Made by a program: the position numbers and the translations under genes. The notes beneath the pieces were generated by a model. That model saw only the letters and a list, made by a program, of their open reading frames with translations. It had not been told where the DNA came from and did no database searches. DNA of 64,000 bases from Asterias rubens. Taxonomy: Eukaryota. Position 1 is the stretch's first letter, and the number at the start of each line of letters is the position of its first letter. Positions 17,628 to 59,964 of the stretch are shown here, piece by piece. The stretch covers positions 992,001-1,056,000 of the forward strand of contig NC_047062.1 of the NCBI RefSeq assembly GCF_902459465.1. Reading direction: 5' to 3'.

Positions 17628-20520
17628 TTAAGTCCTTTAATATTTGAGAGAGAAAATACCTCTTTCTCAAAAACTACATTACTTCAGAGGGAGTCGTGTC
17701 TCACAATGTTTTATACTGTCGGTGCCTTTAAAGGAATGGAATGGCCACGTTGGATGAAATACCACTTTTCAACCAAACAGCATCTGAATAGACACAGGTA
17801 ATGTACATTAAAAAAGAACAAATAAAACATCACAAATACTGAAAAAGGGCCCTTTGTAGCTATGCATAAGAGCAATATTAACAGAATTTGGAAAATGTGT
17901 ACAAGATCCCACAAATCTAATAAAAAGAAGACAGGAAAAAAAAGTAAAAGCAGAACACATAAAAAACCCTGATAACTGAAACACTAGCCCCGAGAAAAAA
18001 TCTAAAACGTTAATTGAAATCGGGGTAGATTTACAGGTATGCTACAACACGGTGAAAGGCAGTGGAGTCACCGTGGGCAGGGGGCTGGGGCTTCCCCTCT
18101 TAAAAGAACTACTTCAGCCTTCTACGTAATCCAACAAACAGTAGTTACTCTCACACTTTTGCTGAGCAAAATCTTGCGTGCTTATTCTCAGTTTCTCCAA
18201 TCAATTTCCCCCTCAATGTTTTCAATGCTTTAATTGAATCTTACCTAGGATAGTGGTAGACAATGACAAACATTGATAATAAATCATAAATGATTGCATT
18301 CCTACACAATAAATATTTGCATACAGTCAGCCTTCCCCTTTAATGAGCGAAGAGTAAGTAAATGCAGCCATCTGTACGAAATTGCAAATCCATCAAGAGA
18401 CATCAAGAGATACCCATGCATCAACATGAGGAAATATGACGTTGCGTCAGGTGAGATGGAGGTTGCAGTGTACCATGGAGGAGCACATGGTTACTCATGT
18501 ATGGGTATTGGGGGCTGATATCTTGAGGGAAGGGCGTCTCTTATGTACGGTCCAGAACAAAACTCAAAAATCTGTTATTGTTGTGTTTATAAAAGCGCAT
18601 ATCACAATCACAGAGCAATCTCTATGTGATTTGAGTTAAAAAAAAAAAAGAAGAGAATTCAAGTTACACAATAGAGACAAGAAACCAAAAATTAGCTGTT
18701 GCAAACAACTTACCAACCAAACGGACCGAGAGTATAAATGCAAAAAATAGTTAACGGCCTGCTACGGGGATCACCTCGGGAGTCAGAGTTTTTAACCATT
18801 GCACGAGTAAAAGCAGTCAATATTTGTTTTATAACACCCCAAACATTTCTAACTACTGTACTATTATTATTGAGTTACAGACCTGAATGCTACAATCCAC
18901 GGACGACGCGAATACAGATTGCAAACACTTTTACTGTGCTGCATGTAGTGTCGTGCAATCCGAAATGGTTACAGACTATTAATTTACCATCCTCGTACAC
19001 GCAACGGACGTCTGGGTACTGTACGGCGTGTGCTAGTCTTCGGACTAGCGCATGGCAAACCGATGCACTATCACACGGCCGTCGTCTAGCAAAACTAATA
19101 CATGTCATGTGACGCGCTCTAAACCAATGAGCAGGCAGAATACTTGCAAGGGGTGTTATAAACTTAAATACGTTCTCTGCCATAAAAAGAACCCTTCTTG
19201 TTGGTATTCTTCTTTACATTTTATTGTTTTGGATGTGTGCCGTTTCTATGAAGCATGGGAACTAATATGATTTTGAATTAAATTTTGAATTGAATAGACC
19301 TTTACCATGATGCCACTGTCTTGGTCACGTTCCATGTATCCAATAACAGTACGGGTGCTAACATTCATTGTATAAAAATGAACCAGACTATTATTTTCAT
19401 TCCGGCCTCGTTTTGGTTACATTGATCTGAATGAGAGGAAATTAAAATAGACGCACTTTAATAAAGGTTTATAGGAAGGAATGTCTTTCGTATCTTGAAT
19501 GTGTAAGATAAAAAATGTTTTAAAGTTATCGATTAATGAAAACAAAACAAATGACTACCTGAAGTTTTTCTTGAATGTAATTGGAACTGGTCTTTCTTGA
19601 TTTATAGTCTTCTGTTTCGGTTAAACATCATTGATGCGAGTCGATTACTAGACATTGAATGACATAGTTTATCAAGATCTAGGTCCGAAAGTCACCAGCG
19701 GTTATTTTTTCTTTTGTAATCCAACCTTGAAAACAACGATTAAGTTAATTAAGAAGATTAATAAATATACGCTCTTATTAAATTAATTGGCTTAATGGCA
19801 TGACAGCGAGTTCTTGCAAATAAGATTTTACCCTATTAAAAACGATTTGGCTTGACATTAAACAATTCAATTAATATTTTAAATTGTACACCGCTTTTCC
19901 CCAGTTTATCCTATACTCTAATTAAAACCATAATACATCAAGCTAATTTGCTAGACTAGGTGAACAAAAAAAACTGCAACTGTGACAAAAATTGCCGCTG
20001 TATAGAGAAATCAACTATTTTGTGTAGTAGGATGGCCAACTCGATCCCATCACTGACAATCTACTCCTCTCCTCCCATTGGTCACTTGTTGGGAAGGCCC
20101 TGCCTGTACAAGCGACCAATCAGACCGCTCCAAATTGTTGTCCATCACTGATTAGCTGCTTTCAGTTCTTCCCTCATGAATAAATTACTCAAAAGCCACA
20201 GCCGAAGAAGAAGAAAAAAACACAAGCCTCTGTAAACACTTGGGAGATAATGGAGCATGAAATTTCACTCGAAGGGAACATATGCAAATTCATGTAAAGA
20301 GGAAAAGCATAATGAAGGGAATGCCAGTAACGTTTATTGCTAAAACTCATCCTTGGTTAGATCTAATATCCTTTTTAGAGATCCCTTTCAATTAACCGTC
20401 ACTATGTCATGTTCGATGTTGAACGTGTGTGTGTGTGTGCAGGGGGGGGGGGGGGCTTGGGTAGGTGGACGTCAGAGAGATGAACAGCACGGTGGGTTGG
20501 GTAGGCGGACTCCTGGTGAG

Positions 20521-20646
20521 TATAAATGGCCCGAATGTCACAGCTCAAACTGGCAATAGACACAACTCAGATACCTGTGAGCTTGATCAGTTAGAGAATT
20601 CTACTCTGGAATTGAGAAGTGCGAAACACAGCAACGAATTGAACAG
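20521..20646 (+). promoter_or_regulatory. TATA box plus non-coding first exon
   Basis: TATAAA at 20521, G-rich/GC-box-like sequence upstream, CCAAT motifs near 20076-20120, donor CAG|GTAAGA at 20647, no ATG in the presumed exon. Confidence 0.5.
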
Positions 20647-30392: not shown

Positions 30393-30468
30393 GTATACAC
30401 CCAGCATCCTCCGTAAACTACAGTTATCTGCATCACCTGCGAAACACAGCCACCACATATTCACAAAG
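30393..30468 (+). other. Candidate 76-nt exon (coding or UTR)
   Basis: Acceptor gtttcatatttcag, donor AAG|GTAGGG; two frames open; upstream donor CAG|GTATAC at 30054. Confidence 0.4.
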
Positions 30469-31870
30469 GTAGGGTCATCCTCCGTTATCACCCCCCCCCC
30501 CCCACCACCACCAACCCGGATGGACGAAAACAGTATCAGTACTCGTGTCTTGTGACGGTTACTCTGCACTTGAAGACACATTTTGCTTATACTTCCAAAA
30601 AGTTCCAAGTGAACTTGACTTTGGCGATGATGCAGAAGCTCAGTGTTATATTTCTCTGTTTGTTGTCACTGTTAGTCTACTCTTAATATAACCAGATTCA
30701 TTAAATGGTGAACGTCGAAAGAAGAACATATTAAAATATTTTATGAGAAAATATAATAAGCTATTGCAAAAAGGACATCAGGTGATATTATAAAGTTATA
30801 AATGCGAGAGAAAAAAATTACATAGTTTTCGAATATTTAACAAGATAACATTTTACAAATTAAACTGACATACAGTCAGTAGACAGTGGGGTGAAGAGGT
30901 GCTTCCATTGAATAAACGGTTGCATTGATTTATTTATAATATTTGTTGACCTTTAGTTTTTGAAGCAAACACTCGTGATGACAAGCACATGCGTCTTAAT
31001 TTGGCGCTAGTGCCTGTGTGGCCTTCTCATTATTTATGCAGCTACATCTGGAGCAATCAAAGGAAATTATACATATCCAAACAGTTAGGGAACGAAAGGG
31101 TAGAAATAAAGACAACGAAAATGCTTTTGATCTAAAAGCCCATTGATTGTTAAGTGTAGACTGGTTTCAGTTGTCCTTGGACATAAATCCATCTGAAATA
31201 TTGTCAGAGAAAATAGTTGTTAAGACCCAACGTACCACCGTTGTTAATTCAATTGCCACAACCGAAATGAGCCCTATAAGAACAAAATCCCTCGCTGACT
31301 AATAACTTCTTTCCACTGGATCTTGATTGCCGTACTTGCTGTATTTCTTTCCAAGTAGGAAATTGTTTTTTCAAACTTAAAACAACTCCTCACTTTACAA
31401 ACATGCTGAAAAGCCATTACAGTAAAACAAAACATAAAGTTGACCGATGTAATACTTTTTATAAAAAACAGAGTTGACCTAGACACAATATTTGAAAGTC
31501 TCATTTTTGTGATTTTTCACAGTAGAGTATACAATGATAGAGACGCTGTGTTTATTACAATCTTGGGGATGTATTGTAATGAGTTTACTCTTCCAAAAAA
31601 TACCAAATAACTAACGCTCCCATTAGCGAACAAAAATAATCATTCTTGTTTAAAACAAATAATAATAATGAAGTTAATAAAAGTTAATATTTTTAATATA
31701 AAAGATACAAGGAATACACTACACGTCAAAATTGTCAAATTTCTGCAATGCAATTATGTACCTTTATGCCTACTGCGAATATGTTCCATTCGAAGTAGCT
31801 GTATAACCATCTGTTAAATCGAACCTGATCCTCGCTATATGTCCTAACAAAACAGTCTCATGACTTCCCG

Positions 31871-55655: not shown

Positions 55656-56170
55656 TTAAAACCCACAACTGTACTGAAATGTGTTGCACGTTCTTTCCGT
55701 GTGGCGTGTAACAATGAAAGACACGTATTACATCAGGGTGTTTTTGATAAGATGAGTTTTGTGATGAGATCGCGAGGGATTCGTATCTTCCTGTTTCTAA
55801 CGGACGATGTCGACCCTTTCAAAATGAAACCAATTCTAGCGTAGTTCCTACTCAGGAAATGAGACAAGAGGTTTCAGGTTGGTCTTCTTTTTGTCATGCT
55901 CCAATAAATAGCTGTGAACCACTTGTTTGGCGTAGTATTAACAGTGCATGGTTGTTCATTGACTAGCGACTTATATGATGGTATTGTTGATAACCACTTT
56001 TTCATGGGTACCAAGTACCATCATGCAATTCGACTATTTCAGGCGCAATATGAAACCAATTGAGTGTGTAAAAGTTAATTAACCACATCCAATTTGAATT
56101 GACCATTTGAAATGACAAGTCTATCCTACCCAATAATACAATCAACAATATGAGGCAAAATCCCTCGTCC

Positions 56171-56178
56171 TATAAAAG
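56171..56178 (+). promoter_or_regulatory. Candidate TATA box for the EH-like gene
   Basis: TATAAAAG about 0.9 kb upstream of the CDS, with donor-like GAAG|GTAATT near 56361; link to the gene is inference. Confidence 0.3.
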
Positions 56179-57085
56179 GCAGTTTGTTAATGAATAACTC
56201 CCGTATTAAACAAAAATAAGGCAATGATAATAATTATCCAATTATAAAACATCACAGTATAAGGTGATTTGAACGAGTTCTTCAATTGACTGTCGCCTAA
56301 AAACAGGCCCCGTTAAACATAACTCCTTGGGCAAATGTTTACCTCGAATGTCACTTTGAAGGTAATTTAATCAGTGGTTTGGAAGTTCAGGATATTTGAC
56401 AATTTCAAGAGGTATCTTCATTGTTTCTTGTTAATAATGAAACTGTCAATCAAAAGGAAGCTGCAAACAATGTCATGAATAAACGTAACTCTTTATACGT
56501 GCTGCTCATTCTCAATATCAACAGCATAGTGTTATAACAACATGAAGGGGACTGGCATTGACATAAACAAAATCAAAGTTCTTAATTTGATATGTACATA
56601 ACAACAATTATTGAAACTTTTTTAGTTGTTGAAGCAACATTGTCGTTTTCTGGATTAATGGTATCATAAGTGGCCCTTTTCTCTTATTTTTGAATTGGTG
56701 ATTTATTTCGCAGTTGTCTGTGCTACTTTATGGTTCCCAAACGAAGGCTAATCCAATACAAGCAATCAACGTCACTGGAGAAATGGTTATACGCAATGTG
56801 TATGTTTGGACTGTTTTTCTTACGGGATTTTATGCATTGCATATATTTGGTTTGCGGTATCACCATGAGTGTATCTGCTTGCCAGGTATATTAGAGTTTG
56901 TTCTTTAGAGAACTGTCTTTCTATATATTTTACTACTGCGGAGTCAAATTTTCGGAATTCGGGAGACTTCTCAGTTCTGGAAAGAAATGTCCTGCTTTAT
57001 TACTCTGGACGAAAGGTAGAAAATCTGCTGGGACTACTACTGTTTTTCTCATTGGTGTATTTTCTTCTCTCGTGTTTGTATACAG

Positions 57086-57397
57086 ATGAGGACAGCACTG
57101 GTAACGTTTTTAGCCATGCTTCTGGTTGGCGACCTGATAGTCTCAGCATTACCCATCGACAATGAACAAGACAGTGACCCCATCTTCGATCACCTCTACA
57201 CCCGAAACATAGTCGAACGCAGGAGCCGAAAAGACCTCACCAAATGCATCTCTGAGTGTGTATCCTGCGCTAAGTATGCCGGACTCTACGCTGATAAATG
57301 CGTACGAGGCTGCAGTAGTAAAACAAGCGGGAAAGGGATCATCAATAAGACGGAGTTCGACGCGTGGAGTGCATGCGAGCAGTTCTTACACCGTTGA
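57086..57397 (+). CDS. Eclosion-hormone-like neuropeptide precursor (103 aa, single coding exon)
   Basis: Hydrophobic signal peptide (MRTALVTFLAMLLVGDLIVSA), acidic spacer, basic cluster ERRSRK, then a mature region with C-x3-C-x2-C-x10-C-x3-C-x20-C-EQFL. This matches the eclosion hormone pattern C-x3-C-x2-C...C-x3-C...C. The ATG directly follows a strong acceptor (tttcttctctcgtgtttgtatacag). GC-richer than flanks. Confidence 0.8.
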   Translation: MRTALVTFLAMLLVGDLIVSALPIDNEQDSDPIFDHLYTRNIVERRSRKDLTKCISECVSCAKYAGLYADKCVRGCSSKTSGKGIINKTEFDAWSACEQFLHR

Positions 57398-59030
57398 GTC
57401 TTAAGTTACTATTACGTTTCTTTGTTTTTCGTTCTCTCCTTTGTTATGAACTCTTTCGACCATAAACATTGACCTTTTTGCTTTTACTTGAACTGGAAGA
57501 CACAATTAAAAACCCCGATCCTCATCAGTTAAAGTCTTTGAGATTACTGAAGTAAGCAGAGAGTAGGTACCAAGTTATAGGAATACATGGGTTTGAGATG
57601 GTACCGACCCCTTGGTTGTTCACCCATCCAAGGAAAGGTATGAAATCGGTTTTGAAGAATGCTTGTTCTGAAACATGATTTTGCTTTAAAAAAAAAGTTA
57701 TCCAAATTGAAAGGGATTGCAGTTTGAAATTAAGAAATACTTTATGTAACAGAACCACAAAGGCTGACCAGTTGCCGAAGTGTTGTCCACAAACGTTATA
57801 CAAGTTAGAGTGATGGAATTTAAGTAGGAAACAATCATCAGTTCTACGATGCGCACCATGAAAGGCCGGGTTTCAGTGATAGGCTAATGGACAACCATTC
57901 AATATGACATCTTTAATCAACCCCAACAATATTAAGTACGAAATTCTCTGAACCAATAGAAGTGATATGAACCATTTCTCTGTATGAAGATTGCAGAACA
58001 AAAAACTTCCAGTACATTGGGAAATGAATTTACCGACTTTAGAACTAACATTTAAGCTTTGGGTAAACAATTTCGTTAAAATAATGAGCTATAAAAATAC
58101 TTCTTTTGGACTGCGAGGATTGGTAACTTCTGATTACATTTCAAAACAATGGTCTTTATTCAAATGAGCGTGCCAACAAAATACACGTAATATTGTATAT
58201 AGTTATAACGACATTCCTTAGCAGTATGTATCTTAATCAATGACTTTACATCAATTGCCCTTAATTATCAAATTATGCATTTCGATTTCCTGTTGTCTGT
58301 CAACTACAAGTTGTTACAGCTCTCCTCGGTAAATTGCCCGAATTGGATCGTATTTCCAGACTGTCAGAACTCAGATAGTAAGGCAGTTGGACATTTTCAC
58401 TGTGCTAAAGTGCTTTTTAATTAAAAGTTTAATGTCCATCTCAATTTAGACTTGAATAATGAGTTTGTATGAACAACATCTTTAAATTCGGAACACAGTT
58501 GTGGCAGACGCGTCTTCTGCTGAAAACCCCATTACATACCTTTTTGATAAAGGTACTTGCTTACATACAGTCTTTGGTTATTTGTTGCGTGTGTGGTTAA
58601 CACAAAAGTTTTGCTAAAGGAGGAACACAAACTCAATCTGACATTAAAACCATCCAACGTAGTGATTGATAATTGTCCGTAAGGATGTCTCTTCATAAGG
58701 TACTTGTTTGTGCAATGTATTCTGACTCTGTTAATATACCAGCTACAGATTATGTGTTGTATATATTGAACACTATTGACAGTCAAAAGGATTTGTAGAA
58801 CAAAGTTTAAATATAATTTGTTTGACTGGCACAACATCACAATTTACCAATGTGAAGTGTATGATATGGGAGTGCAAAGCAAATCTATATTGTATCAAAT
58901 GATAAAGCATGCAAGAAATCCATCACTTTAATAGGTCATTTGATCATTCCCTCATCAAACTTGTACCTATTCACAGAGTTTCGCCTAAACAGAACAATAA
59001 GCCATAGGCCCGAGTTCTTCGAAATAATAG

Positions 59031-59091
59031 TAAATGTCCTTTGAACTGTACAATATTGAGTAAATGACCTTTGAACTGTACAATATTGAGT
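59031..59091. repeat. 30-bp tandem duplication
   Basis: taaatg(t/a)cctttgaactgtacaatattgag x2. Confidence 0.95.
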
Positions 59092-59964
59092 CAACGGCCA
59101 AATGTAAATAGCACTCGGGCCAAAATCTTCAACAATTTCGAAATATCTCCACTTTGAATTGTCATCATTTGGAAATAAAACTTGTCTTGATTTTGTAGTC
59201 ATTACGTAACTCATGAATTCTTATGGCTCAAGTTAGTGTAGGCAATAATCACTATTATAAACCGTTGTAAATGTAAACTGGTTTGTTGATTTTGCCTTCC
59301 TCTGCAAACCAACTCAAATGCCTGAACTTAAAGATAAGCAAACCAATAAACGAATACAATTAAATCGAACATATACAGACGGACGATTTGTTTTGGCGAC
59401 AAGAGTGTTTTAATCTTGTGTTCGTGTAATACGAAAGTTAAAAAATAAATTTATATATATCATTATTTTGTAACAGTAGTTCTGTTAATTAAGGGATTCT
59501 AAAAAACGAAAAAAACCTATCACTGTAACCTACCTGTATAGAAAGAAATGGTGAAGAATTTTCAACTTAGGAAATCCACTAGAGCTGCTTAAACCGAAAG
59601 CCCTGCACCATGGCTGTTTTCATGACATTGCTTTACTAATTTTTCAAAATCTACAGCACCTCAGCAAGTAATATTTTCAGGGAAGCTTTCTACTATCATC
59701 TTCAAACTGTGTAAGTTTAATGTAAATCTGCGGACATTGTGTTTTTTTGTCTTATAAAAGGAACATAGATCCTTAAACAAAAAAAATCAGCATCCCTCAT
59801 TTTTGTCTTTATTGCAATATCGAGTCCGGAACTAACGATCCTTTAGTACCAGTGGGTCGCTATGGAACCTATTATGGAGTCTAAGATATTTCTGTTGTAA
59901 TGACATTGATACAATCAAAGCAAGCATCTGTTTGTGGTTTTCTTGTGCAAGTTTTTCCCCTTAA

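Follow-up and report, generated by a model that had tools for sequence, protein, structure and literature searches.

An open reading frame (ORF) of the starfish Asterias rubens raises the question of whether an animal that does not moult, unlike the arthropods in which eclosion hormone (EH) occurs, encodes a hormone of the EH type, and what the kinship of such a product with arthropod EH is based on. The ORF lies in a 64-kb stretch of DNA which was analysed as a whole and which we call the window. In a preliminary description, made from the letters of this DNA, the ORF was read as the gene of an EH-like neuropeptide, belonging to a signalling system that would serve something other than ecdysis.

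Identity and layout of the precursor

The protein encoded by the ORF was found to be identical, at 103 of 103 residues, to the Arnp11 precursor (GenBank KT601734; Fig. S32, PMC4772807). The gene at 57086-57397 is the already published Arnp11, also named Arub EH1 (ArEH1 below), and the comparison with echinoderm neuropeptides proposed in the preliminary description ended in this exact identity. The parts of the precursor are as follows.

57086..57397, + strand: coding sequence of prepro-Arnp11 (ArEH1), 103 aa and then a TGA stop, identical to Fig. S32 of PMC4772807
57086..57148, + strand: signal peptide, residues 1-21, a hydrophobic N-terminus with the length of 21 residues given in PMC4772807
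57149..57217, + strand: acidic spacer, residues 22-44, with 6 D/E and including the conserved IFD motif
57218..57232, + strand: basic cluster R45-R46-S47-R48-K49 (RRSRK), with 2 possible prohormone convertase sites
57233..57394, + strand: six-cysteine peptide, residues 50-103 (54 aa), predicted to form a three-helix bundle
57344..57352, + strand: N-glycosylation sequon N87-K88-T89 in the C5-C6 loop, read from the sequence

The coordinates of signal, spacer and cleavage site agree with those of Arnp11, and words of the published 5'UTR and 3'UTR occur in the window. Semmens et al. 2016 (Open Biol, PMC4772807) described Arnp11 as a protein of 103 residues with a signal peptide of 21, six acidic residues in positions 22-44 and a dibasic site at 45/46, proposed to be cleaved to yield a 57-residue six-cysteine peptide; the product of this cDNA, which was assembled from contig 1082355, was ranked among neuropeptide precursors. 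Arnp11 was then renamed Arub EH1, an 'eclosion hormone-like precursor' of type 1, by Zandawala et al. 2017 (PMC5627052), together with Arnp15a/b (Arub EH2a/b) and sea urchin Spnp11/15 (Spur EH1/2), so the preliminary description was correct in stating that EH-like precursors had already been reported in echinoderms. Guanylyl cyclases resembling the EH receptor were also reported in echinoderms (PMC5627052, PMC6660194). De Oliveira et al. 2019 (PMC6660194) then reported EH-like ligands for cnidarians, acoels, hemichordates and lophotrochozoans as well. Both such ligands and receptor-type guanylyl cyclases of non-moulting phyla are thus published, and the existence of an EH-type system in non-moulters is, like the gene itself, already known. 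In the searchable literature, we found no peptide, disulfide map, glycan, receptor, phenotype or later functional work for Arnp11/ArEH1. The result is consequently a rediscovery of a published gene, and its value lies in confirmation and in an improved gene model.

The cysteines of ArEH1 stand at residues 54, 58, 61, 72, 76 and 97, which gives a spacing of 3, 2, 10, 3 and 20. Cleavage after RR46 would release a peptide of 57 aa, cleavage after RK49 one of 54 aa. The protein ends with CEQFLHR, i.e. 6 residues beyond C6, and ArEH1 contains no YGGF. An AF2 model of the domain (residues 47-103) had a pLDDT of 82 and helices at 2-19, 23-35 and 42-56. The ORF, signal peptide, RRSRK cluster, peptide of ~54 aa, cysteine spacing and NKT sequon named in the preliminary description were all present at 57086-57397 (+). 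The EQFL that it had placed at the C-terminus is there too, only not in terminal position, as it is followed by HR.

Gene structure and transcripts

Arnp11 covers ~39 kb (20456 to ~59500) and consists of three exons, one of them coding.

20456..20646, + strand: exon 1, non-coding 5'UTR, to which cDNA words map; a gtaag donor follows, and a TATAAA lies inside at 20521-20526
30393..30468, + strand: exon 2, non-coding 5'UTR of 76 nt, with cag acceptor, gtagg donor and a cDNA word at 30408-30431
57086..59500 (3' end approximate), + strand: exon 3, with the entire coding sequence and a ~2.1-kb 3'UTR, documented by RNA contigs and AATAAA signals

Both introns (9.7 and 26.6 kb) are situated within the 5'UTR, which places the 5' exons 36.6 and 26.6 kb upstream of the coding sequence, and the acceptor of exon 3 (...tatacag) immediately precedes the ATG at 57086. 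Logan contigs from four runs, belonging to four studies, align from 57084 to past 58800 and then continue for another 496-715 nt. Together with the positions of the AATAAA signals (59345-59350 and 59444-59449), this indicates a 3'UTR of ~2 kb. The alignment starts at 57084, two bases too early, owing to the fact that exon 2 and the intron each end in AG. In all four contigs, CTGCGAAACACAGCCACCACATATTCACAA stands upstream of the junction and corresponds to the last bases (30 nt) of exon 2, which marks an exon 2-exon 3 splice, and the intron stretch 55800-56800 was not covered by Arnp11 contigs in the four runs. From the joined exon 2 sequence and the uncovered intron, it follows that these contigs represent independent spliced RNA. 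Their upstream parts measure 140-189 nt, which exceeds exon 2, so they should extend into an upstream exon, as judged from their lengths. Transcription of the ORF, on which the preliminary description had made its reading depend, is borne out by these spliced contigs from four studies, which cover it. Arnp11 is transcribed and spliced, and its product is conserved (see below). The published Arnp11 contig is 808 nt long, and the 3'UTR found here is ~1.9 kb longer. What we add to the known gene is the three-exon structure over ~39 kb, the longer 3'UTR and the linkage to Arnp15a.

Several further observations concern the surroundings of the exons. A (GT)n run and a G16 tract are located directly upstream of the cDNA start (20425-20530 region), and a C-rich tract follows exon 2 at 30487-30510. 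Judged from lengths, RNA contigs of three runs would start at ~20534-20583. The main transcription start may lie downstream of the published cDNA start, with the TATAAA at 20521-20526 being inside the published 5'UTR. In the 3'UTR, contigs of two runs (X2 and X9) join 57625 to 57935 and skip 309 nt (57626-57934) with non-canonical AT..TA ends; the published cDNA contig terminates near this gap. The 309-bp gap looks like an insertion/deletion polymorphism or an assembly-graph bubble, not like an intron. Just 5' of the coding exon, the intron carries a short high-copy repeat (56846-56998) outside the Arnp11 transcript. In each of the four runs, many unrelated RNA contigs match the repeat over stretches of 35-45 nt (95-99%), and their summed depth goes up to ~14,800; a comparison of the repeat with a phage database gave nothing informative. 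A database protein of 148 aa (P0004, from ENA, on a 1914-nt contig) is not a longer isoform but this same precursor, with the TGA read as Trp and the frame continued into the 3'UTR, an artefact of annotation under another genetic code.

Orthologues and paralogues

Orthologues of the EH1 type from other echinoderms were detected with 92% (P0002), 59% (P0007) and 56% (P0003) identity to ArEH1. All six cysteines are aligned in P0007, P0003, EH2a and EH2b; the called P0002 protein diverges before C6 and therefore shows five. The N-terminal extension called in P0002 resembles a translated upstream intron, a hint that the acceptor is placed as in Arnp11. The RR of the cleavage cluster is retained in P0002 and P0007, and P0003 has NRSR at this place. 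As for the C5-C6 loop, it comprises 20 residues in ArEH1 and P0007, 20 also in P0002, where the sequence stops just short of C6, and 15 in P0003; in the EH2 type it mostly has 17-20 residues, with 10 in EH2b. The NKT sequon, singled out as a notable feature in the preliminary description, did not hold up as such: it is kept in the 92%-identical P0002 only and is missing from P0007 and P0003. Confined to so narrow a lineage, it is a poor basis for a functional claim. The long C5-C6 loop is a feature of the starfish EH1 lineage which is real yet variable in the family, and the sequon is a recent and narrow addition.

Arnp15a/EH2a (C1 ~2,546.6 kb; L002:1387-1716, +) shares a contig of 33.8 Mb with ArEH1 (C1, 1.05 Mb) and lies 1.5 Mb downstream of it, and its entry carries the name Asterias rubens Arnp15a in NCBI/UniRef. 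Its Met codon lies on a separate upstream exon. Arnp15b/EH2b (C18 ~2,218.8 kb; L004:1294-1626, +) has a single-exon coding sequence and is the sole starfish family member with an insect-like C5-C6 loop of 10 residues. The EH2-type proteins (Arnp15a, Arnp15b and Spnp15) have the precursor plan of ArEH1 and the same six aligned cysteines. Their mature domains are mostly 25-38% identical to that of ArEH1 (EH2b 13%), and most of them share W-x-x-C6-x-x-L with it. They differ in the C3-C4 loop (11-13 residues as compared with 10 in ArEH1) and in the C5-C6 loop, which ranges from 10 to 20 residues; EH2a ends in G-RRR, an amidation signal.

An exhaustive search with a profile of EH1 and EH2 against 1.84 billion representatives returned 8 matches. 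Seven belonged to the six-cysteine EH1/EH2 type of echinoderms, and the eighth was a protein of 798 aa, aligned only over a short repeated stretch. No arthropod, mollusc or sea urchin Spnp11 sequence was reached in this search at E <= 1e-3, and a word-index search with the family alignment yielded no further relatives.

Does the ORF represent a gene, and is its product a signal?

ORFs of at least 100 aa are common in the 64-kb window (n=12). One of 103 aa is not rare there, so content, conservation and transcripts have to make the case for a gene. The commonness of such ORFs is what would speak for a chance ORF or a pseudogene at 57086-57397. We consider this practically negligible, since it is refuted by the published cDNA and the spliced contigs from four independent studies; moreover, the reading frame is conserved and the six cysteines are invariant across orthologues and paralogues, apart from P0002 with its five. 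The published cDNA, the spliced RNA contigs and the orthologues at 92, 59 and 56% identity together make the ORF a gene. Another reading, by which ArEH1 would be a cysteine-rich defence or toxin-like peptide with no signalling role, draws on a sub-threshold match of the orthologue P0003 to Pfam Toxin_17 (ergtoxin, E 0.0049), on Kappa-KTx 2.9 in a PDB sequence search (E 0.37) and on a spider lycotoxin cluster that ranked fifth by language-model features. These toxin matches, however, are without significance, cover part of the scaffold only and are not common to the family. The ArEH1 precursor has the build of a prohormone, with an acidic spacer, a dibasic site and one C-terminal peptide, the describing paper (PMC4772807) places Arnp11 with neuropeptide precursors, and expression of the sea urchin paralogue tracks the development of the nervous system. 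A toxin or defence peptide is accordingly very improbable here, if slightly less so than a chance ORF.

Relation to arthropod eclosion hormone

For comparison with arthropods, we used 68 database entries of insect EH, all with PF04736 and from Lepidoptera and aphids only, which were retrieved with a 62-aa Manduca EH probe of approximate sequence. Like arthropod EH, ArEH1 is predicted to be a small secreted helical peptide. The two have the same cysteine order, C-x3-C-x2-C ... C-x3-C ... C, and both show C-x-x-C-x-K-[MY] as a motif and, close to the C-terminus, F-L. Every one of the 68 insect EHs had a cysteine spacing of 3, 2, 12, 3 and 10, so that the two variable loops of 10 and 20 residues in ArEH1 stand against 12 and 10 in 68/68 insect sequences. 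In the preliminary description, the C5-C6 loop was put at about double the insect length, which these figures (20 versus 10 residues) confirm. Between signal peptide and hormone, insect EH is not known to carry either an acidic spacer or a dibasic site. In Manduca EH, the disulfides join C1-C5, C2-C4 and C3-C6.

Beyond the cysteines, little was found that would tie the two groups together. The preliminary description had pointed to the Pfam eclosion hormone family, and PF04736 was matched by none of nine echinoderm family members at E <= 10; searches with the ORF, its mature part, two paralogues and five relatives gave sub-threshold matches to DUF4787, Toxin_17, Gly_radical and Opiods_neuropep only. 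In a six-frame scan of the whole assembly (417.6 Mb in 150 pieces), PF04736 produced noise of 15-20 bits, and none of the three ArEH loci was listed among its matches. Alignment of the echinoderm alignment to 63 insect EH domains by hhalign (P 0.016, probability 2.8%) covered only C1-C5. Single insect EHs scored 13-22 (mean 17.7) against the echinoderm profile, with a probability of 5.7% in one example, and cysteine-fixed shuffles matched or beat the insect EH score in 80 of 300 cases. With HMMER, the insect EHs reached a mean of 9.7 and a maximum of 14.7 bits against the echinoderm profile, with a cysteine-fixed shuffle p of 0.014-0.10. In both comparisons, insect EHs outscored the shuffles by a narrow margin only.

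Structural comparison, likewise suggested in the preliminary description, did not lead to EH either, which was absent from the best 30 Swiss-Prot matches of the ArEH1 domain model in Foldseek. A PDB sequence search and Foldseek against the PDB found no solved EH structure and nothing specific, and shape searches in the ESM Atlas gave nothing specific. A language-model search with the whole precursor had PF04736 Eclosion clusters as nearest neighbours (score 0.78), which we take as a lead only; the Atlas feature search with the mature domain alone gave nothing specific.

In the published CLANS analysis (PMC5627052), the echinoderm precursors grouped with arthropod EH and nearer to EH than to ITP, and the same authors noted little sequence conservation outside the cysteines between echinoderm EH-like precursors and arthropod EH. 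What ties ArEH1 to insect EH is mainly the shared pattern of six cysteines, next to the clustering by BLAST and the receptor phylogeny reported in the literature. The EH-like label of the preliminary description stands as the name used in the literature; its other part, similarity to arthropod EH beyond the cysteine scaffold, was not shown to be significant in these tests.

A weak likeness to the N-terminal domain of opioid precursors

The N-domain of vertebrate opioid precursors (PENK, PDYN and PNOC) has the cysteine order and spacing C-x3-C-x2-C ... C-x3-C ... C that is also seen in ArEH1. This raises the alternative that the echinoderm EH-like six-cysteine domain is related to the opioid N-domain, instead of or alongside arthropod EH. 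Three of the nine family members, all of the EH2 type, matched Pfam PF01160 with E-values of 8.8e-4 to 2.4e-3 (ArEH2a 18.4 bits), the best one over profile positions 2-45 of 47. These matches, at 18-20 bits, are nevertheless below the cut-off of 23.5 bits, and noise in the genome-wide six-frame scan also went up to 20 bits; the ArEH loci were not listed in the PF01160 scan of the genome, and ArEH1 itself has no PF01160 match. In Foldseek against Swiss-Prot, the ArEH1 domain had residues 21-69 of Xenopus proenkephalin at rank 1 (probability 0.57, TM 0.57), hamster PENK at rank 14 and bovine PENK at rank 23 (TM 0.71, rmsd 2.3), the remaining matches being generic helical bundles, and the full-length ArEH1 model again had Xenopus proenkephalin with the highest probability (0.75), although the E-values of all Foldseek matches were above 1. 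By hhalign, the N-domains of chicken PENK (P 2.1e-4, probability 46%, 44 columns) and Xenopus PNOC (P 1.5e-4, probability 52%) aligned to the echinoderm profile with scores that cysteine-fixed shuffles reached in 3 of 300 (PENK) and 8 of 300 (PNOC) cases; both sequences were taken from the machine-read text of Fig. S1 of PMC2865548 and may contain OCR errors. All six cysteines and W-x-x-C6-x-x-[F/L]-L, a motif missing in insect EH, were included in the PENK and PNOC alignments. HMMER, on the other hand, gave 9.9 bits for PENK and 11.2 bits for PNOC, values that do not stand out from those of insect EH (mean 9.7, maximum 14.7); the shuffle p was likewise similar, at ~0.03 for the opioid N-domains as compared with 0.014-0.10 for insect EH. 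None of the similarity scores of the opioid N-domain reached a curated cut-off or significance.

The architecture of the genes and proteins also speaks against this alternative. In vertebrates, the six-cysteine domain heads a long polyprotein with YGGF cores, whereas in the starfish it is the entire product: the starfish proteins stop 6-10 residues past C6 and lack opioid cores (YGGF). In the opioid genes of vertebrates, an intron after C3 splits the domain, while the ArEH1 domain is contained within one exon. In fairness, the echinoderm domain bears a weak similarity to both insect EH and the opioid N-domain, of about the same degree in either case, and one scaffold is present in all three. 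Taking both sides together, we regard a relation to the opioid N-domain, in place of or beside that to arthropod EH, as quite unlikely, and homology of the echinoderm three-helix domain to the N-terminal cysteine domain of proenkephalin, prodynorphin and pronociceptin as unlikely too, if a shade less so; both are far more probable than a toxin or a chance ORF. No paper linking EH-like peptides to the opioid N-domain was found in the openly searchable literature, i.e. that accessible without subscription journals.

A proposed model of ArEH1 action and its implications

Our main reading, to which we assign a probability of roughly 0.85, takes the ORF as the only coding exon of Arnp11/Arub EH1, encoding the precursor of a secreted six-cysteine neuropeptide or hormone, with EH-type signalling taken from the literature. 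According to this reading, the signal peptide would direct the ArEH1 precursor into the secretory pathway, where three disulfides might hold its C-terminal domain as a three-helix bundle. A prohormone convertase would presumably cut at RR46 or RK49 and yield a peptide of 54-57 residues, to be secreted as a neuropeptide or hormone. These steps are suggested by the anatomy of the precursor. As for the following ones, the literature on related systems points to a membrane guanylyl cyclase of the EH-receptor clade as the putative receptor, and the signal might then be cGMP, in a role unrelated to moulting. This part, which the preliminary description also put forward, is an inference in the published papers as much as here.

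The likeness to opioid precursors bears on the last part of this model. Were the kinship with the opioid domain real, the EH label would not be safe, and neither would the guanylyl cyclase receptor that is deduced from it. The EH-type family, said to have been lost in vertebrates, would then persist as the leading domain of opioid precursors, and arthropod EH, echinoderm EH-like peptides and the opioid N-domain would form one ancient bilaterian family. If upheld, this would provide opioid precursors with an invertebrate antecedent and call into question the receptor predictions that are derived from the EH label.
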